64,000 nt of DNA from IMGVR_UViG_3300027793_000052:1-64000; one strand, 5' to 3'. Numbered from the stretch's first letter, positions 2,140 to 21,688 are shown. Notes: generated from the letters alone by a model not told the origin. Program-made: numbers and translations.

Positions 2140-2181
2140 TTGACATTTAAATAAACTTTTGTATATTTGTATCATATTTAT
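2140..2181 (+). promoter_or_regulatory. Composite promoter of tRNA operon 1 (TTGACA / TAnnTTTG / ATATTTAT)
   Basis: TTGACA 2140, TATATTTG 2162, ATATTTAT 2174; near-identical blocks precede tRNA operons 2 and 3. Confidence 0.7.
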
Positions 2182-2212
2182 TAAACACAAAAAATTATAT
2201 AGTAAACTCACC

Positions 2213-2302
2213 ATGACAAAGGCGACAACATACATTGTTTTAACTCACAGAGAGGAGAGAGAACGTTATCTGACTAACAGTCGGAGTGGATGTCGTATAT
2301 AG
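2213..2302 (+). CDS. Leader peptide 1 (MTKATTYIVLTHREERERYLTNSRSGCRI), putative attenuator uORF
   Basis: ATG..TAG between promoter and terminator; AGA GAG GAG AGA GAA CGT run matches downstream tRNA-Glu and tRNA-Arg. Confidence 0.7.
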   Translation: MTKATTYIVLTHREERERYLTNSRSGCRI

Positions 2303-2326
2303 TCATGTCTCTATATATCAAGATAT

Positions 2327-2358
2327 AAACCCCGATTAAGAGTCGGGGTTTTTTATTT
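2327..2358 (+). terminator. Attenuator-type intrinsic terminator, tRNA operon 1
   Basis: AAACCCCGAT/GTCGGGGTTT hairpin plus T run. Confidence 0.8.
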
Positions 2359-2409
2359 TGGCCAATAAATAAAAAATTTATACTTTTGTAAAAGTTCTTT
2401 GATAAACAA

Positions 2410-2481
2410 GCTCCCGTCGTCTAAAGGCAAGGACACATCTCTTTCACAGATGAAATACGGTTTCAAGATCCGTCGGGAGTA
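2410..2481 (+). tRNA. tRNA-Glu(UUC)
   Basis: GCTCCCG/CGGGAGT acceptor; CATCT-CTTTCAC-AGATG anticodon arm. Confidence 0.85.
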
Positions 2482-2486
2482 CAAAT

Positions 2487-2560
2487 GGTTCCGTAACTCA
2501 ATAGGATAGAGTAACTACCTTCTAAGTAGTAAGTTACAGGTTCGATCCCTGTCGGAATCA
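2487..2560 (+). tRNA. tRNA-Arg(UCU)
   Basis: GGTTCCG/CGGAATC acceptor; ACTAC-CTTCTAA-GTAGT; GGTTCGA T-loop. Confidence 0.9.
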
Positions 2561-2650
2561 CAAAAAAAGTGATAAAAAATTTATAAAGCGTATTGACAGA
2601 AGAGGTTTTTATCACTAGTATTAACAAACAAAAACGATATAGTTCTTTAA

Positions 2651-2972
2651 AATACTGATACTTGAATATTTGAAGCGGTTGGAATGATTACATCAAACAA
2701 CTATGATTCAGAAAAAGGACATTTTACCTAAGTATTGTCCAAGGTTTAATTAAAAGATGGGTATTAAGTTATCGTCCTGTTAAACTTAAAAAAACAATGG
2801 GAGTTTGTTAGCAACTCTAAAATCTAACAAGTTAGGAAGGGACTTTAAAACCCCCGAGTTTATTAGTGTCTGTAAAACCTAGTCAGGGTCACTCCTGGTC
2901 TTCCCCGAGATGGGGAACACGAAAAGTAACCATTATTCTGAAACATTCTCAGATATCAAGTTATCTAGTATT
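2651..2972 (+). ncRNA. Candidate Ro60-associated (Y-like) RNA, long form
   Basis: Ends pair (AATACT-GATA-CTTGA with TCAAG-T-TATC-T-AGTATT); carries GAAGCGGT-N8-TTACATC motif; lies upstream of Ro60. Confidence 0.5.
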
Positions 2973-2974
2973 TA

Positions 2975-3063
2975 AAAATATTCTATTGAAGCGGTGAAGA
3001 AAGTTACATCATTATTATTGAAAACGAAAAACACTTTCATCTAAAATACTCAATAGGTACTTT
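2975..3063 (+). ncRNA. Candidate Ro60-associated (Y-like) RNA, short form
   Basis: TATTCTATTGA/TCAATAGGTA closing stem, GAAAG/CTTTC inner stem, same GAAGCGGT-N8-TTACATC motif. Confidence 0.5.
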
Positions 3064-3105
3064 ATTTGTCCACGTTAACTGTAAGAGTTAATTGTGAGAC
3101 CTTAC

Positions 3106-3139
3106 AGTCCCTACGAGTAAAATTGTGGGGACTTTTTTT
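3106..3139 (+). terminator. Terminator hairpin immediately upstream of the Ro60 start
   Basis: AGTCCCTAC/GTGGGGACT plus T run; overlaps alternative hairpin CTGTAAG/CTTACAG. Confidence 0.6.
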
Positions 3140-3169
3140 ATTTTATTAAACAATATTAAATTTTAAGTT

Positions 3170-4780
3170 ATGACAAAGTTCAAATCAAAAGCAGTGGAAA
3201 ATTTTGACGGTGGTATTTCTTATACCTTAAACCCATTGGATACATTACGTATCGTGGCAGCATCATCTATCTTTGGTGAACCATCTTATTACAGAGGTTC
3301 TCACGACAAACCATCTAACTTATCTACGTTAAAGACGTATGACGTGTTAGGTTTGTACAAAGACCCAAGTGATACAACTACTGATGTTTTCACTAAGGCT
3401 ATCGACGAGGCTTTAGACTATGACTTCAAGGCAACCCTTGAGTTAGCTAAGACTCTTCGTCACGAACACTTCATGAGGTTAAACCCAGCGGTTATCTTCA
3501 TTAGAGCGTCTCAACACCCAAAGAGGGTTGAATTTAACGAAGCAAACCCAGGTTTGATGAAACAATACGGTTTGGACATTGTTGGTCGTCCTGATGACAT
3601 CACCAACCAATTTGATTACTACATGTTCTTAAACGGTTCTAAGAATGGTTTACCATCTATCGTTAAGAGGACATGGGCTGAGAAGTTGGCGTCTTTCACC
3701 AAGTACCAAATCAAGAAATATAAGTCAAAGTCATTAATTGACTTGGTTCGTATTTCTCACGCACACTCTGAAGTTATCGATGAGTTAATGAAGACTGGTG
3801 ACGTGGCTGTTTCTGAAACTGAAACAACTTGGGAATCACTTAGGTCTCAAGGTAAGACTTGGAAGGAAATTCTTAACACAATTAAGGTTTCACACATGGC
3901 TTTACTTAGGAACTTAAGGGGTATTTTCACTGAGGTGAATGATACTGAAGTGGCTAAGAAGGTTTTAACTGACCTTAAGGCAGGTGTTAAGTTTGGTAAG
4001 CAATTCCCATTCCGTTACTACACAGCTTACAAGGAAATCGATAAGGTTTCTATAAACCACAAGGGTATGATACTTGACGCTTTACAAGAGTGTCTTGACA
4101 TCTCTATCGAAAACTTCCCTAAGTTAAAGGGTAAGGTGGCTTGTTTATCAGATAACTCTGGTTCAGCTTGGGGTACAATGACCTCTGAGTATGGTACAAC
4201 CCATATTGCTGAAATTGCTAACTTATCATCTATCATCACAGCTTTATGTTCTGATGAAGGATATGTCGGTGTCTTTGGTGAAAGATTGAGTTTAAAACCT
4301 GTTTCTAAAAGAGACGGTATTATTACTCAGTTGGAAGAAACTTGTAAGAGAGGTAAGTCTCAAGGACAATCTTGTGAACACGGTATTTGGTTATTCTTAC
4401 GTGAAGCAATCGACACTAAAACTCACTATGATACTATCTTTATTTATAGTGACATGCAGGCAGGACACGGTGGTCTTTACGGTACAAGTGTAAGCCGTGG
4501 TGACGTTCACTCTAGAGGTGGAAGTTATGTAGACGTACTTAAAATGGTACAAGAATACCGTAAGAAGGTTAACCCAAAGGTTAACGTATTCACAGTCCAA
4601 GTGGCTGGATACAACAACTCTGTTGTACCTGAAAACCTTTACAGGGGTTCAGTACTTGGGGGTTGGACTGGTAAGGAAGCCTTATACGCTAGTGAGGTAA
4701 TCAAGACTTGGGATGAAATTGAGTCTAACGACAAGGTTACATCTGAGGTTGAAGTTACTGAACAAGTAGTACAATCTTAA
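3170..4780 (+). CDS. Ro60/TROVE-domain RNA-binding protein (Rsr-like) with vWA domain
   Basis: MALLRNLR, KQFPFRYYTAY, vWA DNSGS and YSDMQ motifs; 536 aa; codon usage (AAC, TTC, CGT) suggests high expression. Confidence 0.9.
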   Translation: MTKFKSKAVENFDGGISYTLNPLDTLRIVAASSIFGEPSYYRGSHDKPSNLSTLKTYDVLGLYKDPSDTTTDVFTKAIDEALDYDFKATLELAKTLRHEHFMRLNPAVIFIRASQHPKRVEFNEANPGLMKQYGLDIVGRPDDITNQFDYYMFLNGSKNGLPSIVKRTWAEKLASFTKYQIKKYKSKSLIDLVRISHAHSEVIDELMKTGDVAVSETETTWESLRSQGKTWKEILNTIKVSHMALLRNLRGIFTEVNDTEVAKKVLTDLKAGVKFGKQFPFRYYTAYKEIDKVSINHKGMILDALQECLDISIENFPKLKGKVACLSDNSGSAWGTMTSEYGTTHIAEIANLSSIITALCSDEGYVGVFGERLSLKPVSKRDGIITQLEETCKRGKSQGQSCEHGIWLFLREAIDTKTHYDTIFIYSDMQAGHGGLYGTSVSRGDVHSRGGSYVDVLKMVQEYRKKVNPKVNVFTVQVAGYNNSVVPENLYRGSVLGGWTGKEALYASEVIKTWDEIESNDKVTSEVEVTEQVVQS

Positions 4781-4785
4781 AAAAT

Positions 4786-5256
4786 ATGGGGGACTTAATG
4801 TCCCCCTATTTATTTTATAGTGATATTATATTATTATTATATTCCGTGGTAAAGACGGAATATTTTTCATTTCTCAAGTACAACCGATTCAAATTTGGTA
4901 AACAGGAGGTTTCACAATTTGTAATTTTTGAGTTTAAGTGGTTGTTTTCAATAATAATTTTTTATTTTCATAAGTGTGATGATTCACAAGATAGGTTTCA
5001 TACTCACGCTTTTAATGCCCTATCATTTAAACTATTTGGTCAATATGATGAACATATATTAGATGATGAATCTAATGGTTCCTATCATACAGAACGTAGA
5101 ACACAAGTGGTAAAATATTTCCCTAGGGATTCTTATCATCGTATAGCAAACAGTAATGGTTGTTGTACTTTGTTGTTATCAGGCCCATGGAAAAAACATT
5201 GGAAGGAGTATGTTGACGGTAATGTAATACATTATACTTGGGGTAGAAAGAAATAG
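4786..5256 (+). CDS. Cupin-like hypothetical protein
   Basis: RFHTHAFNALSF ... YHRI ... TLLLSGPW pattern. Confidence 0.45.
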   Translation: MGDLMSPYLFYSDIILLLYSVVKTEYFSFLKYNRFKFGKQEVSQFVIFEFKWLFSIIIFYFHKCDDSQDRFHTHAFNALSFKLFGQYDEHILDDESNGSYHTERRTQVVKYFPRDSYHRIANSNGCCTLLLSGPWKKHWKEYVDGNVIHYTWGRKK

Positions 5257-5309
5257 TTTGATTTTAATTTTTTATACACTATATTTGTGGTTAATAAAAA
5301 CAAACAGTC

Positions 5310-5993
5310 ATGGAAAAAGTAACATTAGAAATTCGAGCCGCTGAGGGTGGTGAAGATTCGAAACTCCTTGTGGAGGACATGGCTGCAGTCTATCTGAAAG
5401 CAGCCAAGAATAAAGGTTTTACCGTAGAGTCCGAACATTGAAGAGACGGACTTGTTAGTATTTAGCTGACAGGTAAAGGGGTTAAGAAATACTTCCAAAA
5501 CGAAGTTGGTTGTCATAGATGGCAAAGAATTCCACCCACTGAAAAACGTGGTAGAGTACATACAAGTACAATTACAGTAGCTTTATTAGATTCCCAAAAT
5601 TATCAGGAGATAGACATCAATATGGATGAATTACGTATTGAAACAACTCGTGGTACAGGTAATGGTGGTCAACATAAGAACACAACAGATTCTTGTGTGG
5701 TTATAACCCATATACCAACAGGGATAAAAGTGGTTAGAGATGGTAGAAGTCAACATAAGAATAAGGACGAGGCTTTAAACGAAATAAAACAACGTCTAAA
5801 TGATTTATACCAACAAAACCATATGGATAAAGTTTCTAAAGAAAGAAAGGGTCAAATCGGTAGTGGTAATAGGGGTTCTGAAAAGAAACGTACCTACAAC
5901 CAAAAAATGGATTTGGTTATCGATCATGAAAGTGATAAGTCTACAAGTCTTAAACAATTCATGAAAGGTAAATTAGAACTATTAATGTGTTAA
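5310..5993 (+). CDS. Class I peptide release factor homolog (RF1/PrfH-like, no N-terminal domain) with in-frame UGA and UAG
   Basis: EIRAAEGGED, HRWQRIPPTEKRGRVHTS (PxT) and GGQ all in one frame; stops at 5439 (TGA) and 5463 (TAG). Confidence 0.8.
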
Positions 5994-6068
5994 TATTAAA
6001 GGTGGGAATTACCCACCTTTTTTGTTTTAAAGAATATTTATAAGTGTGAGACATTTAGTAGGTGAAAT

Positions 6069-6260
6069 ATGGAAACTTATGAAAGAGAAAAAATAGATAA
6101 AATATTAGAACTAATTAAGGAGTTAAACATTAAACACAATGATAAGGATTTTGTTATTAGAGAGGTTTTAAATAACGAATTAAGGGCTAACTTAACAATT
6201 AATGGACTATTTGTTTCAGACGAATTCATATCAAATTATATAAAATATGTTATCGATTGA
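6069..6260 (+). CDS. Hypothetical protein
   Basis: ORF track; co-directional in gene run. Confidence 0.5.
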   Translation: METYEREKIDKILELIKELNIKHNDKDFVIREVLNNELRANLTINGLFVSDEFISNYIKYVID

Positions 6261-6263
6261 AAT

Positions 6264-8063
6264 ATGAGACATTTAATCAAGAAAATATTAAAAGAAGACA
6301 TCTTTCAAATGGATAGATTAAGGCAATTGGAAGAAGGTGACTTGTTCATCATCACAAAAGTTAATCAAAATCTAGAAGATTGTGATCCAGATGCTCTTAG
6401 TGTTCTAAACCCACTTATCGGTAAAGTTTGTAAAGTTATAACCACAGATTGGGATGTTAATTTATATGACGGTATGTGTGAAGAACATTATGGTTGGGGT
6501 GCTTATATAATGTCAGAAGATATGGTTGGTGGCCACGATTTATACGAAAAGAATGGTGAATGTAAAAAGGATAAATGTTATTGGGTTAATGACTACTATA
6601 TAGATTATGATATAATAGATGATGTAAATACTGATGAATTTTTTACACAACTAGACGAACAAGAAGAAGATTTTGGATGGATGGATGATATTATAGATAT
6701 ATCTATAAAAATAGGTGATGTTTTTTATATAGTAGATTATAATTACGGTTATGACATGCAACCTATAAATTATAGACCAAATGTAGTAAGATATATTTTT
6801 TATGTTACAGATATTTTTGAAGAAGGCGGTAAACTTCATTTAAATTACAAATATTGTGAACCTGTAAATGTCACATATAACCCAAAAGACTATATTAAAT
6901 CCAAATGTCGTTCCACGCAAGATGAGGTTATTGAATATGAAAGAGCTTTAGAGTTGGTAGATAAACAATATTGGCGATTTATGGGTAATAACAATATGAG
7001 TAATAATATAAACGAACAAGAAGAAGATTTTGGTTGGGCTGAAGAATCCATCTCAGGTGATTTAAATTTGGGTAAATATTTTGAAAATTCTGATATTTGT
7101 TTTGATGATGAAGTTAATGTTGATAACAACTGTAAAATTACCGTAACAAAAGATAGTTTTGTTTTTAAACTAAATTATAGTTGGTGGTTGAATAAATTTG
7201 GTGAAGACAATTGGATGTTGGATAGACTTATCAGATATGGAAGTATGGGATATGACAGTTATTATGTTGATTATGAGTTGGATGATGAGGAGTTTAATTA
7301 TATTTATTATATGATTAATGAAGAAAATAGATATAAACTAGCTGATTGTTTAAGTGTATTAAATGAAGATGTAAGTGAAAATGATTTAAAAAATAATCTA
7401 TATGATGTTTTTGAAAATTTTAATGGTATCTTACCGGTAGAAGGAATGGCCTCAGATGTTGTTTATGAACTATCAAGAGCTTTAGAAAAAAATCGAAATC
7501 AACAAATAAATTTGGAGTTTGAAGATTTAATGTCAAAGACTGTCGCTAAATTTGAACATGTTGGAGGTTGGAAAGAAGACTACATTTTAATAAAAATACC
7601 AAAAGAATTGGTTTTAGAAGCTTTAGAGCAAAATAAGGATGAAAATTTAACTGATATTGTGAAAAAATACAGTTACGTTTTTGATATAAATTGGGATGAT
7701 TTTTATTATGGTACTTTTGATTTAAGTGGTTCTGAGGATCAAATTAACGATATTATGGCCGATTATTTGGATAAATTAATTGATATATTAAATAATGATG
7801 ATACGATACAGACATTAAATAATTTTACATCTTCATTAAAAAAATTAGGTTTTAAAAAAGAAAATAATAAATGGTATAAAACAATTAAAAAAGATAATTT
7901 AGATTATGTTTTTATTGTTAGTGATATAAATGGTGAAGACATGAATTTAATTCTAACTATAACCGTTTTTTATGATACACAAACCAAATATAAAAATTAT
8001 AAATATAAAATAAGTTTTGACGAGTTGGGTTATTACATTAATAATTATATTTTAGACATATAA
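6264..8063 (+). CDS. Modular protein with MRHLIKKILKE leader and two EQEEDFGW junctions
   Basis: Leader plus repeated junction motif. Confidence 0.7.
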   Translation: MRHLIKKILKEDIFQMDRLRQLEEGDLFIITKVNQNLEDCDPDALSVLNPLIGKVCKVITTDWDVNLYDGMCEEHYGWGAYIMSEDMVGGHDLYEKNGECKKDKCYWVNDYYIDYDIIDDVNTDEFFTQLDEQEEDFGWMDDIIDISIKIGDVFYIVDYNYGYDMQPINYRPNVVRYIFYVTDIFEEGGKLHLNYKYCEPVNVTYNPKDYIKSKCRSTQDEVIEYERALELVDKQYWRFMGNNNMSNNINEQEEDFGWAEESISGDLNLGKYFENSDICFDDEVNVDNNCKITVTKDSFVFKLNYSWWLNKFGEDNWMLDRLIRYGSMGYDSYYVDYELDDEEFNYIYYMINEENRYKLADCLSVLNEDVSENDLKNNLYDVFENFNGILPVEGMASDVVYELSRALEKNRNQQINLEFEDLMSKTVAKFEHVGGWKEDYILIKIPKELVLEALEQNKDENLTDIVKKYSYVFDINWDDFYYGTFDLSGSEDQINDIMADYLDKLIDILNNDDTIQTLNNFTSSLKKLGFKKENNKWYKTIKKDNLDYVFIVSDINGEDMNLILTITVFYDTQTKYKNYKYKISFDELGYYINNYILDI

Positions 8064-12531: not shown

Positions 12532-12578
12532 TTGACAAGTAATAAACTTTTACTATCTTTGTATCATATTTATTAACA
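12532..12578 (+). promoter_or_regulatory. Composite promoter of tRNA operon 2
   Basis: 47 nt identical to 17274-17320; TTGACA, TATCTTTG, ATATTTAT. Confidence 0.75.
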
Positions 12579-12595: not shown

Positions 12596-12688
12596 ATGAA
12601 GACTTTAACAAACATATTATTCGTGATGACACTAACGGTGTTATTTCAGTTTACACAAACTGAACTCGGGTTCTTATGTCTAAGTTAA
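12596..12688 (+). CDS. Leader peptide 2 (MKTLTNILFVMTLTVLFQFTQTELGFLCLS)
   Basis: 22 of 29 non-start codons are Q/F/M/T/V/L, the amino acids of the downstream tRNAs. Confidence 0.8.
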   Translation: MKTLTNILFVMTLTVLFQFTQTELGFLCLS

Positions 12689-12713
12689 TCATTTAATATA
12701 TTAACAAATTTAG

Positions 12714-12748
12714 AAGAACCCGAGAAAAACTCTCGGGTTTTTTTATTT
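12714..12748 (+). terminator. Attenuator terminator, tRNA operon 2
   Basis: AACCCGAGA/TCTCGGGTT plus T run; left arm also pairs perfectly (11 bp) with 12665-12675. Confidence 0.85.
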
Positions 12749-12753: not shown

Positions 12754-12827
12754 TATCCCGTCGCCTAATTGGCATGGCACTAGATTTTGACTCTAGCATA
12801 GTACAGGTTCGAACCCTGTCGGGATAA
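12754..12827 (+). tRNA. tRNA-Gln(UUG)
   Basis: CTAGA-TTTTGAC-TCTAG; TATCCCG/CGGGATA. Confidence 0.88.
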
Positions 12828-12857
12828 CCGAAGAAGTTATTTGACATATTATATTTT

Positions 12858-12930
12858 GTGGAAGTTACCAAGTTGGTCAAGGTGTTGGTCTGAAAAACCA
12901 ATTATATGAGTTCGATTCTCATCTTCCACA
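12858..12930 (+). tRNA. tRNA-Phe(GAA)
   Basis: TTGGT-CTGAAAA-ACCAA; GTGGAAG/CTTCCAC. Confidence 0.88.
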
Positions 12931-13061
12931 CAACAAGCCGTAGGTATGAATAAGTATATATATATATATATAATATTATTTTAATAACTTATTTAATCAT
13001 TAATTAAAATAATCATCTAAAGTTCGATAATTTTTATCGATATATAATGATATTTATTACT

Positions 13062-13895
13062 ATGAAATGGTATAAAAAAGATATTGAAACATTGATTGAA
13101 TTAATTCGTCAAGGTAACACCTATGATGAAATAGGTGTTATAATGAAAAGAAGTAGATCTTCTATTAAAGCTAAATTATTAAAATTGGGTGAGACATATA
13201 GAAAGTATTCTGAAAACAATTATTATGAAAAGGTTAATTGTAAAAATTGTGGTATAGAATTTAAATCTTTAATGTCTAATAAACAAAAATTTTGTAACCA
13301 TACATGTGCTGCAAGTTATAATAATGTAATTAGAGGTAAAAGAAGTCAAGAAACAAAAAATAAAATAAGTAAATCATTAAAAAGTAAAAAAAAGGAGAAA
13401 TATGATTTAAATCCTAAAAAATGTATGAAATGTGGTGAACATATACCATATAGTAAATGGTGTAATTATAGAAAAAATTGTGACGAATGTAACATTATTA
13501 TTCGTAAAAATATGGGTAGGATTTTAGGTCAAAAAACCTCACAAACCAAAATAAAAAGATCGAAAGACGAGATAAATTTATATGAGTTATGTAAGATGAG
13601 TTTTAACGATGTTGAACATAATAAAATAATAAGTTCTGGATGGGATGCTGATATTGTTATAAATGATTATAAAATACTTATACTATGGAATGGTCCTTGG
13701 CATTATAAACAGTTACCATTAAAAAACCATAGTTTAAATCAAGTACAAACTAGAGATAAAATAAAACAAAAATTGTTTGAAAGTTTAGGTTGGAGAGTTA
13801 TAATATTTGAAGATAGATATTACACACCATATACAGCTTTTGATTATTTAAAAAATATAATTCGGGATATATCTCCCCACTCTCATAAGGTGTAG
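13062..13895 (+). mobile_element. Putative free-standing homing endonuclease (Cys-rich DNA-binding repeats plus Vsr/PD-(D/E)xK-like C-terminus)
   Basis: CKNC...FCNHTC, WDADIV..ILILWNGPWHY, RDKIK..GWRV; inserted inside a tRNA cluster. Confidence 0.6.
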
Positions 13896-13941
13896 AAAGA
13901 GTAATTGGCAACATGTGAGTTCAACTCTCACTATCCCGACA
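13862..13941 (+). ncRNA. Atypical tRNA-like RNA with CAU anticodon loop and no normal D-arm
   Basis: 8-bp TCGGGATA/TATCCCGA stem, CTCATAA loop, GTGAG-TTCAACT-CTCAC T-arm; only ~7 nt between acceptor and anticodon arm. Confidence 0.55.
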
Positions 13942-13985
13942 AAATAATGGTTCGATCTGTTCAAATCAGATATACGGTACTATAT

Positions 13986-14059
13986 TCCGGTGATACTCTG
14001 AAGGTAAGGGTGCTCGCCTTGTAAGCGAGATTTAGTCGGTTCGATCCCGACCACCGGAT
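13986..14059 (+). tRNA. tRNA-Thr(UGU)
   Basis: CTCGC-CTTGTAA-GCGAG; TCCGGTG/CACCGGA. Confidence 0.88.
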
Positions 14060-14064
14060 CAAAA

Positions 14065-14135
14065 GCCCTGATGACGTAATGGTAGCGTACTAATTTTACA
14101 TGTTAGCAGCAAAGGTTCAATTCCTTTTCAGGGCA
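14065..14135 (+). tRNA. tRNA-Val(UAC)
   Basis: CTAAT-TTTACAT-GTTAG; GCCCTGA/TCAGGGC. Confidence 0.8.
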
Positions 14136-14141
14136 CAAAAA

Positions 14142-14218
14142 GCCTTCGTGACGTAATTGGTAACCGTGTTAGTTTTAGAAACTAAATTTTGTGAGTTCAA
14201 ATCTCACCGAAGGCACCA
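14142..14218 (+). tRNA. tRNA-Leu(UAG), short variable loop, CCA encoded
   Basis: TTAGT-TTTAGAA-ACTAA; GCCTTCG/CGAAGGC. Confidence 0.85.
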
Positions 14219-14266
14219 AAAATTTTGATAATAAATAAACTTTTACTATATTTGTATCAACAAAAT

Positions 14267-14340
14267 GTTCCCATGGCGAAATTGGTAAACGCAACGAGTT
14301 TAAGCCTCGTATGTTCTCGGTTCAAATCCGGGTGGGAATA
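14267..14340 (+). tRNA. tRNA-Leu(UAA), short variable loop
   Basis: ACGAG-TTTAAGC-CTCGT; has its own TATATTTG promoter just upstream. Confidence 0.82.
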
Positions 14341-14556
14341 CAAAACATTGACGATATGGCGTGTAGGTGTAACTCGTTATAACACCGAGGGGAACATATG
14401 GTATACGAGAAACCATTGTGGTGTGTCTGAAGGGTCAATGTTGATATGGGGTGAGAATCTTAGTTGGCCACTAAGAAAATATGGAAGGGTGTCGCGTTAC
14501 CCAATCGGCTCAAATCCGATCCACTCCACTTTGGGTTATTTTTTGACCAAAAAATA

Positions 14557-16163: not shown

Positions 16164-16213
16164 AAAATACTTGACAGGAGATAAAAATTAATATATAATT
16201 GTATCATTAATAT

Positions 16214-16285
16214 CGCGATGAGGGTGTTGGTTCCCCACCGGTCTCATAAACCAGGTCCACGGCCGTTCGATTCGGCCCGTCGCCA
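16214..16285 (+). tRNA. tRNA-Met(CAU), possibly initiator type
   Basis: CTCATAA loop; C1:C72 mismatch in acceptor stem; anticodon stem lacks the usual three G-C pairs. Confidence 0.75.
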
Positions 16286-16382
16286 CTAAGTCCCCTATAG
16301 TATTATAGGGGATTTTTTTTAACATTAAAGACAACTTGACAAATTTAACAATCATAACGATATTTATATAAAAAGATATACC

Positions 16383-16961: not shown

Positions 16962-17030
16962 AAACTATAAGTAATATTTTTTTACTGTTTTTTCTTATAG
17001 TTAATTTTAAATAATCATACATGGACAGTA

Positions 17031-17261: not shown

Positions 17262-17273
17262 TTTAAAAAATAG

Positions 17274-17320
17274 TTGACAAGTAATAAACTTTTACTATCT
17301 TTGTATCATATTTATTAACA
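17274..17320 (+). promoter_or_regulatory. Composite promoter of tRNA operon 3
   Basis: 47 nt identical to 12532-12578. Confidence 0.75.
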
Positions 17321-17338
17321 AACAAAACAATTAAAGAA

Positions 17339-17434: not shown

Positions 17435-17459
17435 TGGGAATTAAGTTTTTTGTACAAGG

Positions 17460-17496
17460 AAAACCCACCACATGAAAATGTCGGTGGGTTTTTTGT
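17460..17496 (+). terminator. Attenuator terminator, tRNA operon 3
   Basis: AAAACCCACC/GGTGGGTTTT plus T run; competing strand at 17401-17412. Confidence 0.8.
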
Positions 17497-17522
17497 TATT
17501 TGACATATTGGTAAATTAAAAT

Positions 17523-17611
17523 GGAGAGTTAAGCAGATGCATTGGAGCGTCGACCAGCTTTGAAACCTGGGTCTCGTTAAGTCGGGTGGGGGTCGGGTCC
17601 TCAGCTCTCCG
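17523..17611 (+). tRNA. tRNA-Ser(UGA)
   Basis: TTTGAAA loop, long variable arm, GGAGAGT/GCTCTCC. Confidence 0.75.
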
Positions 17612-17617
17612 CAAAAT

Positions 17618-17706
17618 GGTGTTAGAGTCGGATATTGGTTAGCCGAGCTTGTCTGTGAAACAAGTGTTCTTTAGTGAACGTGCGGGTTCAATCCCCGTCT
17701 ATCACC
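17618..17706 (+). tRNA. tRNA-His(GUG)
   Basis: CTTGT-CTGTGAA-ACAAG; G-1:C73 pair; enlarged variable region. Confidence 0.8.
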
Positions 17707-17713
17707 CAAATAC

Positions 17714-17788
17714 GGGTCTGTAGTACTAATTGGATAAAACTTTCGGCTGTTAACCGAGATGATGTGAGTTCGAGTCTCACTGGACCCG
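17714..17788 (+). tRNA. tRNA-Asn(GUU) copy 1
   Basis: TTCGG-CTGTTAA-CCGAG. Confidence 0.85.
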
Positions 17789-17795
17789 CTGATTT

Positions 17796-17871
17796 GGACT
17801 GTAAGCTGACAAGGGGTAGCTGTGGCCTGTTAAGCCAAGGGTGGTGGGTTCGATTCCCACACAGTCCGCCA
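17796..17871 (+). tRNA. tRNA-Asn(GUU) copy 2, CCA encoded
   Basis: TGGC-CTGTTAA-GCCA; GGACTGT/ACAGTCC. Confidence 0.85.
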
Positions 17872-17874
17872 AAC

Positions 17875-17946
17875 GGGGGTATAGCTCAGTGGTAGAGCAG
17901 AGAGCTGTTAACTCTAAGGTCGTAGGTTCAATCCCTTCTACCCCCG
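17875..17946 (+). tRNA. tRNA-Asn(GUU) copy 3
   Basis: AGAG-CTGTTAA-CTCT; canonical D-arm. Confidence 0.9.
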
Positions 17947-17953
17947 CAAATAT

Positions 17954-18026
17954 AGTATCGTGTCTGAACGGTTTAGGAACTATCCTGATAAGATAGGAAA
18001 AGTGGGTTCAACTCCCACCGATACTA
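17954..18026 (+). tRNA. tRNA-Ile(GAU)
   Basis: CTATC-CTGATAA-GATAG. Confidence 0.85.
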
Positions 18027-18033
18027 CTAAAAT

Positions 18034-18107
18034 ACATCTGAGACCATATAGGAATTGGTACTGGCTTCCAAACCCAGTTGTTGCAGGTTCGAATCCTGTC
18101 AGATGTG
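18034..18107 (+). tRNA. tRNA-Trp(CCA)
   Basis: TTCCAAA loop; ACATCTG/CAGATGT. Confidence 0.8.
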
Positions 18108-18112
18108 CAAAA

Positions 18113-18202
18113 GGAAGATAGGTAAATATTGGTTTGTTACAGCATCCTGCTAAGATGTCCCGGGTAATACCGGTGAGGGTTCAATTCCCTTGTCTTCCGC
18201 CA
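18113..18202 (+). tRNA. tRNA-Ser(GCU), CCA encoded
   Basis: GCATC-CTGCTAA-GATGT; long variable arm. Confidence 0.88.
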
Positions 18203-18205
18203 AAT

Positions 18206-18293
18206 GGAGAGTTAAGGAAGGGAGTGGTTCCCTCGCTTGTTTGGAAAACAAGAACCCATTAAGTTGGGCACAGTTCGACTCTGTATCTCTCCG
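18206..18293 (+). tRNA. tRNA-Ser(GGA)
   Basis: CTTGT-TTGGAAA-ACAAG; long variable arm. Confidence 0.85.
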
Positions 18294-18303
18294 CTAATAA
18301 CAT

Positions 18304-18375
18304 GGGCGTGTCATATAAGGGTTATTATGCGAAGCTTATACCTTCGTCAAGGTGGCTCAACTCCACCCACGCCTA
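18304..18375 (+). tRNA. tRNA-Ile(UAU)
   Basis: CGAAG-CTTATAC-CTTCG; GGGCGTG/CACGCCT. Confidence 0.78.
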
Positions 18376-18380
18376 CAAAT

Positions 18381-18455
18381 GGTTCCATAGTGTAATTGGA
18401 TAACACGCAAAGCTACGAACTTTGAGACTTGAGGGTTCAAATCCTTCTGGAACTA
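18381..18455 (+). tRNA. tRNA-Arg(ACG)
   Basis: CAAAG-CTACGAA-CTTTG. Confidence 0.88.
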
Positions 18456-18460
18456 CTAAC

Positions 18461-18487
18461 AAACCCACCCCATGGTGGGTTTTTTTA
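18461..18487 (+). terminator. Terminator ending tRNA operon 3
   Basis: AAACCCACC/GGTGGGTTT plus T run. Confidence 0.8.
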
Positions 18488-18522
18488 TTTACATATGCCC
18501 CTAGTTTAAGTATAATTTATAT

Positions 18523-19041
18523 ATGATTAAAAATAGTATTCCTGAACATAGAATGGGTGTACATGTTTCTGTACCGATAGAAGATATTAGACAGAACATG
18601 GATTTTGGTAATATAATCCAACCTAGATGGTTATTAACAATACCACACAATCATGGTTTATATCAGTATTTAGTAAAAACAGATGGTCCATCAGTGGTAA
18701 CAGTTGGTAATATTGATTTTGGTGTACCAAGATTGGAATGGCAACCATTAAAATTAACCGTTGTAAGATGTGATGATTATGACACCACAAATACTATAAC
18801 TTATACCAGTGGTACAATTACATTAGGTGATAGTCCTTTAGATGTAATCAGAAATTGGATGATGAGTTATGAAAAGAAAAATATTAGGTTGGAAAAAATA
18901 AACCATAATGGTTTATGGCATGAAAGGTTTGATATAAGAGGTTCATTTATAACAGAAATGAATCATGAGGTAATTATGGATAGGGAGATCAGTCAAATGG
19001 AGATAACAATAAATTTTGACCATTTACAGTATATATTATGA
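18523..19041 (+). CDS. Divergent T4 gp19-like tail tube paralog
   Basis: EWQPLKLT..VIRNWM..KKNIRLEKINHNG..ERFDIRGSFITE..EITINFD resembles the gp19-type pattern. Confidence 0.45.
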   Translation: MIKNSIPEHRMGVHVSVPIEDIRQNMDFGNIIQPRWLLTIPHNHGLYQYLVKTDGPSVVTVGNIDFGVPRLEWQPLKLTVVRCDDYDTTNTITYTSGTITLGDSPLDVIRNWMMSYEKKNIRLEKINHNGLWHERFDIRGSFITEMNHEVIMDREISQMEITINFDHLQYIL

Positions 19042-19508
19042 AAGAAAAAATTATGAGCAAGGTGTTGAAAAAGATAATAAAAGAATCGTTATTGTTAGAA
19101 TCTATAGATATTTTTGATATAAATAACATACCTTGTGAGTTTAATATACATACTGAAAATAATAATAACATAACAGTAATATTCACACCAAATTCAGAAG
19201 ACTTTTACCAATTAAGTATTGAAATAAAAGATGACGGTTGTTATTATGTTATATTCGGTGTTATTATTGATGATGTAGTTAGAACATCTTTGACTTTAAA
19301 TAGTGATTACAGACTTAAAGTTTTATCTACTGTGTTCTCTTTAATTAAATACTATACAGATAAGTATAACGTTGAATGTTTGGAAATGGATATAGATGAT
19401 GAAATGAGATTAAAATTATATAATCTTTATTTTAGTAAACATTTTAAAAATTTCCAAGTAGATAAGTTAGGTAACAAAGTGAGATTAGTAAAAAATGATA
19501 AACTTTAA
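19038..19508 (+). CDS. Hypothetical protein with KVLKKIIKE leader
   Basis: ORF track; leader motif. Confidence 0.55.
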   Translation: MKEKIMSKVLKKIIKESLLLESIDIFDINNIPCEFNIHTENNNNITVIFTPNSEDFYQLSIEIKDDGCYYVIFGVIIDDVVRTSLTLNSDYRLKVLSTVFSLIKYYTDKYNVECLEMDIDDEMRLKLYNLYFSKHFKNFQVDKLGNKVRLVKNDKL

Positions 19509-19812
19509 TCAATATTTTAAAGAAATTGTTAGACCAATAATTGGTGGGGATATGATAAAGGATGTTATATTGGTTAATAACGCTAAAATTAAAAATATAA
19601 CAATAACGGAAGAAATTGAGTTACAAAAAAATAGTGTAGGTATTGATTTAATTGAGGATTGGACTTTTGATTTTATAGACCTTATTCAAAAAATAGAAAA
19701 AGATTATGGAATCACAATAAAAGATGATGAATATTGTTGTGATAATAACGGTTATTTCACTGTTAAAACTTTTGATGAATTAAATGATATTATAAAAAAT
19801 AAAACATTATGA
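19495..19812 (+). CDS. Acyl-carrier-protein-like protein lacking the DSL serine
   Basis: WTFDFIDLIQKIEKDYGITIKDDE...TFDELNDII aligns to the ACP helix II-IV pattern. Confidence 0.4.
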   Translation: MINFNQYFKEIVRPIIGGDMIKDVILVNNAKIKNITITEEIELQKNSVGIDLIEDWTFDFIDLIQKIEKDYGITIKDDEYCCDNNGYFTVKTFDELNDIIKNKTL

Positions 19813-20081
19813 AAGAAAAAATTATGAGCAAGGTTTTTATAACCTTATTGGTTGTATGGGTGTTTTCGGCAGTTTATTTGTCGATTAATTCAATTTTTGG
19901 TATCTTTATGGATACAAATCCAAATATATCTAAAGCCATATTAGGTTTTAGTTTTTTAGGTATGGTTGGTTCTGGTATCGTTAACAAATTTATTGGTAAC
20001 GATTTAAATAAAATCGGTGAAGATTTAAAACAAAAAGGTTGTAAAACTTGTAAACAAAAGAATAAGAATGGGAATGTTTGA
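19809..20081 (+). CDS. Membrane protein
   Basis: Two TM segments; C-terminal CKTC. Confidence 0.55.
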   Translation: MKEKIMSKVFITLLVVWVFSAVYLSINSIFGIFMDTNPNISKAILGFSFLGMVGSGIVNKFIGNDLNKIGEDLKQKGCKTCKQKNKNGNV

Positions 20082-20541
20082 TTATCTTAATGTTGACATC
20101 AATATTCTACCTGATTTAACAGAAGAAGAAAGGGTTAAATTAGGTGGTAATAATATTGATTGGCAAACAAAACATTTTGAATGTGAAATGACCCATGTTT
20201 ATATTGTTGAGGATACAGAAAATAAATTTAGACATTCATTCTTAAAAAACAGAACACCTTATAAATTACAAATAAAAAGATTTGATTGGGAAGAGGTACC
20301 AAAAGAAGAAAGACCGTACCCAAATGCTGATGAAAATTCTTTTGAACACCTTCTAGGTTCTTTTAGGGAAATTAATGTAAGAGTTGAAGATTTAGATTAT
20401 ACAGGAACTTTTACTTTCTATACTTATATAAAACCAGAAGATGAGGGGATTGGTGATGTTAAAAAGTTAAAATGGGTTGAGTTTATTTGTGAAGTTGAAA
20501 ATGGTAAAATAATTTCAATAAAGCGGTTGACAGATGAATAA
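20068..20541 (+). CDS. Hypothetical phage protein
   Basis: ORF track. Confidence 0.55.
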   Translation: MGMFDYLNVDINILPDLTEEERVKLGGNNIDWQTKHFECEMTHVYIVEDTENKFRHSFLKNRTPYKLQIKRFDWEEVPKEERPYPNADENSFEHLLGSFREINVRVEDLDYTGTFTFYTYIKPEDEGIGDVKKLKWVEFICEVENGKIISIKRLTDE

Positions 20542-20760
20542 TAATCCTTATATTTGTATAAGAAATAAAAATACATAACATAAATTTAACATAAGCGTTG
20601 ACAAATAAATAAAACTTTATTAATTTTGTCCATATTTATTTATAGAAGTTGTGGTTCTGATGGGTTTCAGGAACCACCCCAAAAAAGACAGATACAGAAC
20701 GGGGACTGTTTACAACGAAAACCCCACAAAAAAAACTATAAACAAATTAAAACTAAAAAA

Positions 20761-20868
20761 ATGAGAAAGAATTACACATATCAACCGAGTACACCGAAAG
20801 CAGGGAAAGTAGCCGATAAAGGCTGTGATACCTTGAATGGTTGTGGTATGTACAATTCTGTCTCATAA
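20761..20868 (+). CDS. Leader peptide 4 (MRKNYTYQPSTPKAGKVADKGCDTLNGCGMYNSVS)
   Basis: 11 of 12 codons in PKAGKVADKGCD are from the Y/P/D/G/A/C/K set of downstream tRNAs. Confidence 0.78.
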   Translation: MRKNYTYQPSTPKAGKVADKGCDTLNGCGMYNSVS

Positions 20869-20892
20869 GAATATATAGAGAAGAGTTTAAAT

Positions 20893-20930
20893 AACCCCCA
20901 CAACCGATAAAAAAGTTGTGGGGGTTTTTG
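20893..20930 (+). terminator. Attenuator terminator, tRNA operon 4
   Basis: AACCCCCACAAC/GTTGTGGGGGTT plus T run; competing GGTTGTGG at 20839-20846. Confidence 0.85.
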
Positions 20931-20943
20931 TTTATAGTTATAC

Positions 20944-21025
20944 CCGTAAGTTGAACAGGTGGTGAGTTCCGTTGACTGTAGATCAACCGTTTTAAACTGT
21001 GGGGGTTCGATTCCCTCCTTACGGA
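20944..21025 (+). tRNA. tRNA-Tyr(GUA)
   Basis: GTTGA-CTGTAGA-TCAAC; variable arm. Confidence 0.85.
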
Positions 21026-21045
21026 CAAAAACGTTCATTGAAAAT

Positions 21046-21169
21046 AAAAAGAATAGAAGCGGTGGTATTGGTTACATCGATAATGGATATCAATTTGACA
21101 GCAAATCAAACGTTGTGGGTTCGAGTCCCATGATAAAAAACACCGATATTTTTATTCTCTGTTCTTTTT
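21046..21169 (+). ncRNA. tRNA-Cys-like body closed by a Y-like stem
   Basis: GAAGCGGT-N8-TTACATC motif, D-like hairpin, TTTGA-CAGCAAA-TCAAA, GTGGG-TTCGAGT-CCCAT; no normal acceptor stem. Confidence 0.55.
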
Positions 21170-21175
21170 AAATAT

Positions 21176-21254
21176 ATGGGGTTGGAGGAGTCAGGTTTTC
21201 CTCGCTTGGTTTGGGACCAAGAGACTTGCGTGGGTTCAAATCCCACACCCCATA
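21176..21254 (+). tRNA. tRNA-Pro(UGG)
   Basis: CTTGG-TTTGGGA-CCAAG. Confidence 0.82.
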
Positions 21255-21260
21255 CAAAAC

Positions 21261-21338
21261 GGATACGGCGCATAACGGCTGGTGTACCTGACTGTCTATC
21301 AGGTTTTAAGAGGGTTCGACTCCCTTCGTATCCGCCAA
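21261..21338 (+). tRNA. tRNA-Asp(GUC), CCA encoded
   Basis: CCTGA-CTGTCTA-TCAGG. Confidence 0.88.
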
Positions 21339-21340
21339 TG

Positions 21341-21410
21341 CGGGATTAGCATAAAGTTAATGTACTAGTCTTCCAAACTAGTGAAGTCGGATAGTTACCG
21401 GCATCCCGCT
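21341..21410 (+). tRNA. tRNA-Gly(UCC)
   Basis: CTAGT-CTTCCAA-ACTAG; GCGGGAT/ATCCCGC, U73; non-canonical T-loop. Confidence 0.78.
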
Positions 21411-21420
21411 CTAAAATTAT

Positions 21421-21495
21421 GGGCTACATCCCGAAGGCAGGGCACTTGATTTGCACTCAAGTGAAAACGGTAGGGTTCGATTCCCTCGTGGTCCA
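21421..21495 (+). tRNA. tRNA-Ala(UGC)
   Basis: CTTGA-TTTGCAC-TCAAG; G3-U70. Confidence 0.85.
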
Positions 21496-21509
21496 CAAAT
21501 ATAATAAAA

Positions 21510-21600
21510 GGGTCTGTGGTGTGAGTGGTTTAAACCACCTGTCTGCAAAACAGGGATGACAATTAATTTTGTTACGTCAGTTCGAATCTGACCAGACCCT
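21510..21600 (+). tRNA. tRNA-Cys(GCA) with long variable arm
   Basis: CCTGT-CTGCAAA-ACAGG; U73. Confidence 0.82.
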
Positions 21601-21612
21601 CTAAAAAATAAA

Positions 21613-21687
21613 GACCTCGTAACTTAGTTGGTTTAAAGTGCTAATCTTTTAAATTAGAAATCGTGAGTTCGAATCTCACCGGGGTCA
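21613..21687 (+). tRNA. tRNA-Lys(UUU)
   Basis: CTAAT-CTTTTAA-ATTAG. Confidence 0.88.
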
Positions 21688-21688
21688 C

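Follow-up and report, generated by a model that had tools for sequence, protein, structure and literature searches.

In the leader-peptide transcription attenuators of amino acid biosynthetic operons (trp, his, leu, thr, ilvGMEDA, and pheA; Yanofsky-type), a promoter is followed by a short translated ORF enriched in regulatory codons, mutually exclusive antiterminator and terminator hairpins, and an intrinsic terminator before the structural genes, with ribosome position acting as the switch. Multi-amino-acid panels exist in the thr and ilv leaders, and his-leader attenuation is used experimentally as a read-out of codon decoding speed (PMC4046918). A component of the translation apparatus is also controlled in this way, as the pheM leader of E. 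coli regulates pheST, which encodes phenylalanyl-tRNA synthetase. T-box riboswitches instead bind tRNA directly, without translation, to switch an antiterminator/terminator pair upstream of genes of the tRNA and amino acid economy. Phages carry tRNAs that replace host tRNAs that are depleted or cleaved, as described for the T5 tRNAs against anticodon nucleases (PMC10264068) and T5 tRNA-Lys against PARIS (PMC11464382).

Here we examine a giant phage in which each of four blocks of tRNA genes is preceded by a short ORF written in codons that the block decodes, so that these tRNAs are probably transcribed only when ribosomes struggle with those codons. The same design occurs in many other uncultured phages, and our literature searches found no description of it.

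Four tRNA units with leader ORFs

We analyzed a 64,000-nucleotide stretch of the phage sequence (IMGVR_UViG_3300027793_000052:1-64000; hereafter, the window). It contains four units consisting of a promoter, a short ORF (leaders L1 to L4), a terminator, and tRNAs (Table 1). Each leader ORF lies 27-140 nt downstream of a TAnnTTTG promoter belonging to one promoter repeat family, and is followed 22-27 nt later by a hairpin and T-tract that lie 9-60 nt before the first tRNA. The 3′ part of each ORF holds a segment (segment 2) that is complementary to the left arm of the terminator.

Table 1. Coordinates of the tRNA units and associated elements in the window
Coordinates	Strand	Feature	Details
2140-2561		Unit 1	
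2140..2169	+	Promoter P1a	TTGACA-N16-TATATTTG, Bacteroidota-type -7 box
2213..2302	+	Leader ORF 1 (L1)	29 aa, MTKATTYIVLTHREERERYLTNSRSGCRI; control codons AGA GAG GAG AGA GAA at 2249-2263; segment 2 at 2278-2288
2327..2351	+	Attenuator terminator 1	11-bp stem, -14.3 kcal/mol, T-tract
2358..2388	+	Second, leaderless promoter-like site	TTGGCC..TACTTTTG; between terminator 1 and tRNA-Glu; promoter family D19; resembles the tRNA-Glu promoter of L002 (another sequence in our numbering)
2410..2561	+	Cluster 1	tRNA-Glu(UUC) 2410-2482, tRNA-Arg(UCU) 2487-2561
12532-14341		Unit 2	
12532..12561	+	Promoter P2	TTGACA..TATCTTTG
12596..12688	+	Leader ORF 2 (L2)	30 aa, MKTLTNILFVMTLTVLFQFTQTELGFLCLS; control run of 15 codons at 12617-12661; segment 2 at 12664-12676
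12711..12745	+	Attenuator terminator 2	-19.3 kcal/mol
12754..14218	+	Cluster 2	tRNA-Gln 12754, Phe 12858, homing-endonuclease-like ORF 13047-13895, borderline tRNA-like element with a CAU loop 13863-13939, Thr 13986, Val 14065, Leu(UAG) 14142
14225..14341	+	Leaderless copy of the promoter and tRNA-Leu(UAA)	Promoter 14225-14254, directly before tRNA-Leu(UAA) 14267-14341
16171..16315	+	Stand-alone tRNA-Met unit	Consensus promoter 16171-16199, tRNA-Met(CAU) 16214-16286, terminator 16288-16315; no leader
17274-18482		Unit 3	
17274..17303	+	Promoter P3	95% identical to P2
17339..17434	+	Leader ORF 3 (L3)	31 aa, MKNWHNISSIHSNRINSSVYTWCVLSNQDNT; control run of 16 codons at 17345-17392; segment 2 at 17397-17413
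17459..17493	+	Attenuator terminator 3	-19.5 kcal/mol
17521..18482	+	Cluster 3	tRNA-like element 17521-17610 (unsupported Ser(UGA)), His 17620, Asn x3 17714/17796/17875, Ile(GAU) 17954, Trp 18034, Ser(GCU) 18113, Ser(GGA) 18206, Ile(UAU) 18304, Arg(ACG) 18381, end terminator 18461-18482
20527-21688		Unit 4	
20527..20628	+	Tandem promoters P4a and P4b	P4a 20527-20556, P4b 20598-20628; followed by a 130-nt structured 5′ UTR
20761..20868	+	Leader ORF 4 (L4)	35 aa, MRKNYTYQPSTPKAGKVADKGCDTLNGCGMYNSVS; control region 20773-20829; segment 2 at 20838-20847
20893..20926	+	Attenuator terminator 4	-19.8 kcal/mol
20944..21688	+	Cluster 4	Tyr 20944, tRNA-like element 21072-21139, Pro 21176, Asp 21261, Gly 21340, Ala 21421, Cys 21510, Lys 21613

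ARAGORN and Rfam confirmed the tRNA clusters, including tRNA-Asp, Ile(UAU), and Ser(GGA). Although a preliminary description stated that the four operons together cover all 20 amino acids, the clusters decode every sense codon except CGG and ATG, and thus 19 amino acids. tRNA-Met is not in the four operons and stands alone with its own leaderless promoter. Two other calls in that description, the first of three Ser tRNAs and a "CAU-like" tRNA, are only tRNA-like. The Ser element received no tRNA score, though it can be drawn as a cloverleaf by eye, and the CAU-like element scored 28.5 bits against a 29-bit threshold. A tRNA-like element in cluster 4 scored 21.4 bits.

Leader composition and alternative folds

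To determine if the leaders differ from chance, we examined their composition. The leader runs LFVMTLTVLFQFTQT and NWHNISSIHSNRINSS, of 15 and 16 residues, are the longest runs of their residue sets in all six frames of the 64 kb, while REERER, in L1, ties for second. Codons of the leader's own cluster make up 21 of 29 in L2 (P 3.5e-7), 20 of 30 in L3 (P 3.8e-6), and 19 of 34 in L4 (P 9e-3). L1 is the weakest case, as only the local five-codon run matches. Every amino acid of each cluster occurs in its leader, and the correct leader-to-cluster assignment ranks first of 24.

We next folded the nascent RNAs with the ribosome at different positions. With a ribosome stalled on the control codons, folding predicts that segment 2 pairs with the left arm of the terminator; with the ribosome at the stop codon, only the terminator is predicted to form. 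In L2, segment 2 and the left arm pair over 11 perfect bp (-19.6 kcal/mol), which was reached in 0 of 500 shuffles (p 0.002). L2 is the only leader for which this antiterminator is individually significant: the value was 0.10 for L4 and 0.12 for L1, and the L3 pairing was no better than shuffles (254 of 500), forming only in the position-dependent folds. The four leaders combined gave a Fisher P of 0.004. In four of eight leaders folded, W2 among them, the antiterminator forms even without a ribosome, and therefore the default state of an untranslated transcript differs between units.

Most of the leaders begin ATG AAA ACN/AAY after an A-rich stretch. The missing Shine-Dalgarno sequence fits a Bacteroidota host, as indicated by the TAnnTTTG promoters, whose consensus appears to be of the Bacteroidota type.

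Related units in other phages

Other phages carry the same design with different amino acid groupings, and the leader tracks the grouping. L038, which is homologous to L4, has the leader MKNYKTYKGCDAKADKGCDYILNGQNMSV before Lys, Tyr, Asp, Gly, Ala, and Cys; it has no tRNA-Pro and no Pro codon. Three other leaders are L039 (..IITSTSSRNGISIFCS..FTGRNNG..), before Cys, Asn, Ile, Ser, Phe, Gly, Thr, and Arg; L049 (..RTNTATVATTTTAPVGGRPVR..), before Pro, Ala, Thr, Gly, Val, and Arg; and L045 (..TPCPVAFRRGTGTGTAMPPG..), before Arg, Thr, Val, Ala, Gly, and Pro. Among 12 pairs of leader and cluster, 0 of 200,000 permutations reached the observed match, and among 7 non-homologous pairs the true assignment is the single best of 5,040. 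Antiterminator complementarity over the 12 pairs gave a Fisher P of 1.5e-10.

We also surveyed viral contigs independently of the bait gene and of the promoter motif, obtaining 26 more non-redundant leaders. Of 45 terminators followed by three or more tRNAs, 40 have only a small ORF ending less than 70 nt upstream. For 18 restricted clusters, the summed z for composition was 29.5, compared to 1.9 +/- 4.3 when permuted (0 of 100,000). Although some survey leaders, such as L116 and L126, show no enrichment, leaders before near-complete tRNA sets hold all 20 amino acids in 40-59 residues in 4 of 8 cases. The antiterminator had p<0.05 at 16 of 26 sites (Fisher P 1.2e-16).

Notably, one family of eight leaders shows compensatory changes. 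Segment 2, left arm, and right arm change together, with AGTTAGGGG/CCCCTAACT/AGTTAGGGG in some and AGTTAAGGG/CCCTTAACT/AGTTAAGGG in others. In leader L098, segment 2 follows the left arm while the right arm keeps a G-U pair. Homologous leaders keep an open frame through segment 2 while the peptide sequence drifts, and L039 and L044 even differ by a 2-nt indel near the end.

Interpretation and comparison with known systems

As the preliminary description proposed, the data support trp/his-type ribosome-mediated attenuation with control codons that match the tRNAs behind them. In the model we favor, a ribosome translates a leader whose middle is a panel of the codons that the downstream tRNAs decode. 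If these codons are decoded quickly, the ribosome runs on over segment 2, which lies inside the ORF 0-30 nt before the stop codon; the terminator then forms and transcription ends before the tRNAs. If any codon of the panel is decoded slowly, as could happen when a tRNA is scarce, cleaved, or uncharged, the ribosome stalls upstream, segment 2 pairs with the left arm as that arm emerges, and the polymerase reads through into the cluster. We estimate the probability of this reading at about 0.8. Translation of the leaders, transcription-translation coupling (apparently not established in Bacteroidota), conditional read-through, and the physiological trigger are inferred; metatranscriptome contigs, which carry only mean depth and cannot resolve 3′ ends, were uninformative. 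Control is also not exclusive, since a promoter-like site lies between the L1 terminator and tRNA-Glu, and tRNA-Leu(UAA) has its own leaderless promoter although TTA is the commonest control codon of L2. The result would be a self-limiting, demand-driven supply of phage tRNAs, with the amino acids divided among separately gated operons. Anticodon-nuclease attack, suggested in the preliminary description, is one possible trigger, but the element would respond to any shortage of decodable, charged tRNA.

Possibly, the same attenuator hardware responds mainly to amino acid supply or tRNA charging in a starving host, as a nutritional or growth-phase control rather than a sensor of intact tRNA lost to host defenses or host shut-off. 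Classical leader attenuators respond to charged tRNA, nothing in the sequence separates uncharged from absent tRNA, and the leaders sample many amino acids at once, as a general monitor of translation capacity would. We consider this reading less likely, since making more tRNA does not relieve amino acid starvation, so the output would not correct the signal; the exact match between codon panel and tRNA set fits a feedback loop on the tRNAs themselves.

Other explanations appear very unlikely. The hairpins could be ordinary, possibly leaky, terminators or processing and insulator elements before constitutively expressed tRNAs, with the ORFs as untranslated by-products. Small ORFs are frequent in AT-rich DNA, leaderless promoters occur next to some tRNAs, and the antiterminator statistics of L1 and L3 are weak. 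However, leader composition tracks tRNA content across unrelated clusters, the runs are the longest in the window, and the complementary segment always lies inside the ORF just before the stop and co-varies with the terminator arm. Direct sensing of tRNA by codon-anticodon pairing, in the manner of a T-box, would suit the regulated function and the antiterminator/terminator read-out. However, no T-box or other riboswitch family matched, even at a permissive E-value (no RF00230-type hit at E<=0.1 over positions 1-24000); the leaders are only about 90-190 nt from the predicted start to the terminator and lack a conserved T-box sequence; and 15-16 cognate codons in a row, in frame between an ATG and a stop, are the signature of a translated panel. 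Finally, the ORFs, which are conserved as open frames with a common MK[TN] start, might encode functional micropeptides linked only incidentally to the tRNAs. Yet peptide sequence is not conserved between homologous units, as in W3 against L038a and in the C-terminal frame change between L039 and L044, and residues in segment 2 change as the pairing requires (K-L-G, K-L-R, K-L-E). Only composition is kept, and it follows the tRNA set.

T-box riboswitches use a single specifier codon and a conserved T-box sequence and are found mainly in Firmicutes. The studies of T5 concern the tRNAs themselves, with no demand-sensing control described, and the T5 tRNA region has small ORFs but none of this architecture. 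The pheM leader regulates a synthetase, senses one amino acid, and is cellular, and the E. coli tRNA-Phe gene pheV itself has no leader. Compared to the leader-peptide attenuators of amino acid operons, the regulated genes here are tRNAs, not enzymes. Rfam amino acid operon leader families (Trp_leader, His_leader, Leu_leader, Thr_leader) do not match at the gathering score, the only hit being a sub-threshold Trp_leader match (27.2 bits against 41) over the L1 terminator. The panel covers 2-7 amino acids, and up to all 20 in relatives, chosen to equal the tRNA set downstream; segment 2 lies inside the ORF upstream of the stop; and the element is phage-borne, in a Bacteroidota-type expression context without Shine-Dalgarno sequences.

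tRNA clusters and candidate leader ORFs in the window

The window, with approximately 30% G+C, comprises the first 64 kb of a 317,983-bp IMG/VR contig. A near-identity search of GenBank phages with positions 2100-22000 gave only stray tRNA hits, a distant search with the third tRNA cluster gave generic tRNA matches in T4-like phages, and no cultured relative was found in these searches. When ten large ORFs were compared with PHROGs, only the Ro60-like protein matched. A search for close relatives using a protein that flanks the second tRNA unit recovered only the same phage on two contigs, 100% identical, leaving no strain variation to exploit. Promoters of the TTG...TAnnTTTG type, which probably corresponds to the Bacteroidota sigma-A consensus, occur before protein genes as well as before tRNA genes and would account for the lack of Shine-Dalgarno sequences at the leader ORFs.

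ARAGORN identified 22 tRNAs and Rfam 24, all on the + strand between 2410 and 21688, and relaxed ARAGORN settings added Ser(GGA), Ile(UAU), Asp, and a lone Met. Four units share one layout, consisting of a member of a repeated promoter family, an ATG-initiated ORF of 29, 30, 31, or 35 codons, a G+C-rich hairpin with a T-tract 22-27 nt after the stop, and the tRNAs. The peptide strings and residue runs given in the preliminary description are exact. LFVMTLTVLFQFTQT and NWHNISSIHSNRINSS are the longest runs of their residue sets in any of the six frames of the window, while REERER of leader 1 ties for second place for {E,R}. At the codon level, 21 of 29 codons of leader 2, 20 of 30 of leader 3, and 19 of 34 of leader 4 are decodable by their own clusters (binomial P = 3.5e-7, 3.8e-6, and 9e-3, respectively), but leader 1 has only the local run AGA GAG GAG AGA GAA. 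Every amino acid served by a cluster appears in its leader, and the true leader-to-cluster assignment ranks first of 24.

Some details of the preliminary description required correction. Although it stated that the four operons cover all 20 amino acids, the four clusters decode all sense codons except CGG and ATG, which amounts to 19. tRNA-Met forms a separate unit with a consensus promoter and its own terminator but no leader, and the same arrangement is seen in a relative, phage L002. In the window, tRNA-Met starts 15 nt after the -10 element. The "CAU-like" tRNA is borderline, falling just below the Rfam threshold, and the element counted as a third tRNA-Ser is not supported. In addition, a promoter-like site, resembling the leaderless tRNA-Glu promoter of L002, lies between the leader-1 terminator and tRNA-Glu, and a leaderless copy of the promoter precedes tRNA-Leu(UAA). 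Together with the tRNA-Met promoter, these suggest a basal supply for some species.

Other unusual features lie among the tRNA operons. Three paralogous tRNA-like genes share the acceptor AGTCAGG/CCTGACT, have oversized or irregular anticodon regions, and are separated by G+C-rich, ORF-free stretches. In two of the three RNA libraries this region has the highest depth, while the DNA run is mostly flat. Many other contigs join 14860 to 15435, suggesting that an abundant normal tRNA with the same ends is present elsewhere in the community. tRNA-like genes with long insertions downstream of a leaderless promoter in contig L038 parallel window 14225-15460 and may reflect intron-containing tRNAs. 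A 26-nt element (TTGAAGCGGT...TTACATCA) occurs twice in the region of an ORF-free stretch that precedes a Ro60/TROVE-like RNA-binding protein gene and once inside tRNA cluster 4, where a weak tRNA-like element lies. Possibly, these are Y-RNA-like partners of the Ro protein.

Features of the window and of related contigs, with coordinates
Sequence	Feature	Coordinates	Remarks
Window	Segment 2, leader 1	2278-2288	duplex -8.8 kcal/mol
Window	Segment 2, leader 2	12664-12676	duplex -19.6 kcal/mol (11 perfect bp)
Window	Segment 2, leader 3	17397-17413	duplex -11.5 kcal/mol
Window	Segment 2, leader 4	20838-20847	duplex -14.5 kcal/mol
Window	Promoter-like site before tRNA-Glu	2358-2388	
Window	Leaderless promoter copy before tRNA-Leu(UAA)	14225	
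Window	tRNA-Met unit	16171-16315	tRNA-Met at 16214-16286
L002	tRNA-Met unit	1405-1520	no leader
Window	"CAU-like" element	13863-13939	28.5 bits against a threshold of 29
Window	Element described as tRNA-Ser	17521-17610	no tRNA score
Window	tRNA-like element in cluster 4	21072-21139	21.4 bits
Window	Region of odd tRNA-like genes	14342-15480	genes at 14840-14940, 15058-15158, 15385-15460; ORF-free stretches at 14342-14830, 15160-15380
L038	tRNA-like genes with long insertions	1213-2650	Rfam tRNA hit of 110 nt at 1517-1626; split Leu/Ser-like gene at 2357-2640
Window	ORF-free, promoter-to-terminator stretch and the Ro60/TROVE-like gene it precedes	2593-3140 and 3170-4780	Pfam TROVE; phrog_850
Window	26-nt element	2670, 2986, and 21054-21079	
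Window	5' UTR of leader 4	20632-20760	strong hairpin at 20650-20680; GTTGTGG at 20649; CCCCACAA at 20720
Window	Homing-endonuclease-like ORF	13047-13895	
L031	Homing-endonuclease-like ORF	1986-2837 (-)	
L039	Homing-endonuclease-like ORF	3439-4233	
Window	Paralogous proteins interspersed with the tRNA operons	6264-8063, 8063-8488, 11853-12524	shared N-terminus M(R/K)(H/N)LIKKI(L/I)KE and repeated EDFGW motifs; no Pfam match; 11853-12524 is the flanking protein used to search for close relatives
L031	Member of the same protein family	around 5017 (-)	
Window	DnaJ C-terminal/zinc-finger protein, Mom-like protein, and HNH endonuclease (Pfam)	171-884, 10290-11033, 15493-15975	encoded among the tRNA operons
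L002	GOLLD RNA	2233-2646	Rfam, 282.8 bits

Predicted alternative pairing in the leaders

To determine if the leaders could form mutually exclusive structures, we searched for the best pairing partner of each terminator's left arm. In each leader this segment, designated segment 2, lies in the 3' part of the ORF, 9-19 nt before the stop. We then folded the nascent RNA with a ribosome in two positions. With a ribosome placed on the control codons, the fold gave this antiterminator in all four leaders, while with the ribosome at the stop codon only the terminator could form. Against dinucleotide shuffles, the complementarity is individually significant only for leader 2, as the number of shuffles reaching the observed energy was 0 of 500 for leader 2, 50 for leader 4, 59 for leader 1, and 254 for leader 3 (combined P = 0.004). 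In folds without any ribosome, segment 2 of leaders 1, 3, and 4 is sequestered by the control-codon region, a four-segment design like trp, whereas in leader 2 the antiterminator forms by default, a three-segment design. Leader 4 also has a 130-nt 5' UTR behind tandem promoters, which holds a strong hairpin and two stretches resembling the terminator arms that may add further alternative pairings.

Leaders and tRNA clusters in other viral contigs

We looked for the same architecture elsewhere. A scan for the promoter motif recovered two other phages. We then used as bait the homing-endonuclease-like ORF inside cluster 2 (conserved MKW...CKNCG...FCN.SC.A.YNN), which sits inside tRNA clusters of several unrelated phages, including Prevotella phage Lak-C1, while GIY-YIG-like ORFs occupy similar positions in L038. 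Scans of viral and metagenome contigs with this bait recovered more loci. A search for a terminator, a small ORF ending just upstream, and tRNAs downstream revealed the same architecture with different amino-acid groupings. In L002, a GOLLD RNA lies between a promoter and the leader/attenuator of the 16-tRNA cluster, such that GOLLD and the attenuated tRNA operon would be on one transcript.

Leaders recovered in other contigs and the tRNAs behind them
Locus	Leader	tRNAs
L038	MKTINVHMISISNWGRNSHH...	His, Ser, Asn, Ile, Trp, Ser, Arg
L038	MKNYKTYKGCDAKADKGCDY...	Lys, Tyr, Asp, Gly, Ala, Cys (no tRNA-Pro called, no Pro codon, unlike window leader 4)
L039	...IITSTSSRNGISIFCSDFTGRNNG...	Cys, Asn, Ile, Ser, Phe, Gly, Thr, Arg
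L049	...RTNTATVATTTTAPVGGRPVR...	Pro, Ala, Thr, Gly, Val, Arg
L045	...TPCPVAFRRGTGTGTAMPPG...	Arg, Thr, Val, Ala, Gly, Pro
L002	43-residue leader with all 20 amino acids	16 or more tRNAs

Over 12 leader/cluster pairs, the summed enrichment z is 39-40, compared to 8-9 +/- 5 for permuted assignments, and none of 200,000 permutations reaches it. For 7 non-homologous pairs, the true assignment is the single best of 5,040. Antiterminator complementarity over the 12 pairs gives Fisher P = 1.5e-10. Ten of the 12 leaders have a TAnnTTTG box 27-140 nt upstream, and most begin MK[TN].

To obtain a sample independent of both the bait and the promoter, we scanned IMG/VR for GGGTTTTTT-N3-30-GTAGCTCAG, a pattern that requires only a T-tract followed by a tRNA D-arm. 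This gave 76 sites. Of 45 sites followed by three or more tRNAs, 40 have only a small ORF ending within 70 nt of the hairpin, and 26 non-redundant leaders remained after removal of near-duplicates. For the 18 with restricted tRNA sets, the summed own-cluster z is 29.5, compared to 1.9 +/- 4.3 when permuted (0 of 100,000). Examples from this survey are L078 (MRNTMRNLLSSLFSLLSSSLYS... before Phe, Leu, Ser, Tyr), L140 (...LSSPSLYPSQL... before Leu, Pro, Ser, Tyr), and L113 (...PSTPRWCGCFCGST before Cys, Gly, Met, Pro, Ser, Thr, Trp). Notably, leaders in front of near-complete tRNA sets are unusually diverse, with four of 8 having 20 different residues in 40-59 positions (P = 0.001-0.02 each). Pairing of segment 2 with the left arm beats shuffles at p < 0.05 in 16 of 26 sites (Fisher P = 1.2e-16).

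One family of eight leaders is related to L002, and in this family segment 2, the left arm, and the right arm change together. Five members have AGTTAGGGG / CCCCTAACT / AGTTAGGGG or a close variant, while L104, L105, and L112 have AGTTAAGGG / CCCTTAACT / AGTTAAGGG. In L098, segment 2 (AGTTAGAGG) follows the left arm (CCTCTAACT), while the right arm keeps a G and forms a G-U pair. The antiterminator is paired in 97% of cells, with two of its pairs changing on both sides, and the terminator is paired in 100% of cells. Although the sample is small and the sequences are related, making this supportive rather than conclusive, the encoded residues at segment 2 change accordingly (K-L-G, K-L-R, K-L-E), which argues that the RNA pairing, and not the peptide, is under selection. 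Likewise, the leaders of L039 and L044 keep the frame open through segment 2 but differ by a 2-nt indel near the C terminus.

Interpretation and comparison with known leader systems

The best-supported reading is classical ribosome-mediated attenuation applied to tRNA genes. Fast decoding of the codon panel would let the ribosome cover segment 2, and the terminator forms. A stall on any panel codon would free segment 2, the antiterminator forms, and the tRNA cluster is transcribed. Since the products are the tRNAs that decode the panel, the loop would be a negative feedback on decoding capacity. This interpretation, as proposed in the preliminary description, is supported computationally, with the corrections above, and generalizes far beyond this window, but translation of the leaders and conditional read-through are inferred. 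Metatranscriptomes contain the region, but as Logan contigs with contig-mean depth whose breaks coincide with the repeated promoter, and they allow no statement about termination. Candidate triggers include codon-usage mismatch, decay of host tRNA after shut-off, tRNA-cleaving defences, and amino-acid limitation, and the anticodon-nuclease attack suggested in the preliminary description is one plausible case.

Chance or untranslated ORFs appear to be ruled out by the composition and co-variation statistics, the latter with the reservation noted for the small family of eight. A T-box-like RNA sensor is not supported by the Rfam search, and the long in-frame codon panels argue against it, while a micropeptide function is contradicted by the lack of peptide conservation.

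One possibility, to which we assign a probability of roughly 0.6, is that codon-panel leader peptides gating tRNA operons are a widespread class of phage regulatory element, in which each operon is switched on only when ribosomes stall on the codons it serves. Full-text searches found no description of leader-peptide control of tRNA genes, although the literature searched was incomplete and earlier or very recent work may exist. Such elements would give phages a built-in sensor of host decoding capacity for each codon group, which would also fire when host defences cleave tRNAs or when host tRNA decays after shut-off. Phage tRNA genes are usually discussed as constitutive cargo, for codon compensation or counter-defence. 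A demand-sensing switch would mean that phages top up decoding capacity only when needed, would explain why tRNA genes in large phages sit in discrete operons with particular amino-acid groupings, and would offer a natural read-out, namely which shortage induces which operon, for the debate between codon compensation and tRNA-targeting defences. It would also supply compact, modular sensors of codon-specific translation speed. Dozens of examples are already retrievable from public viral contigs.

We also examined other tRNA genes for this arrangement. The E. coli tRNA-Phe gene pheV has no such leader. In phage T5, the small ORFs among the tRNAs lack terminators and codon matching, and the Cys-rich T5.070 looks like a zinc-ribbon protein. 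In Prevotella phage Lak-C1, a 37-codon ORF and a strong terminator lie before Trp/Ile/Val, but we consider this case unconvincing, as the antiterminator complementarity was not significant (165 of 500 shuffles).

The closest known systems are the trp, his, leu, thr, ilv, and pheA leaders and the pheST leader, with which the leaders described here share the same hardware. What differs is that the target is tRNA genes, that the sensor is a panel defined by the operon's own tRNA set, up to all 20 amino acids, that segment 2 lies inside the ORF, and that the setting is phages with Bacteroidota-type signals. These leaders would extend leader-peptide attenuation to a new class of target genes and to Bacteroidota-type expression systems.
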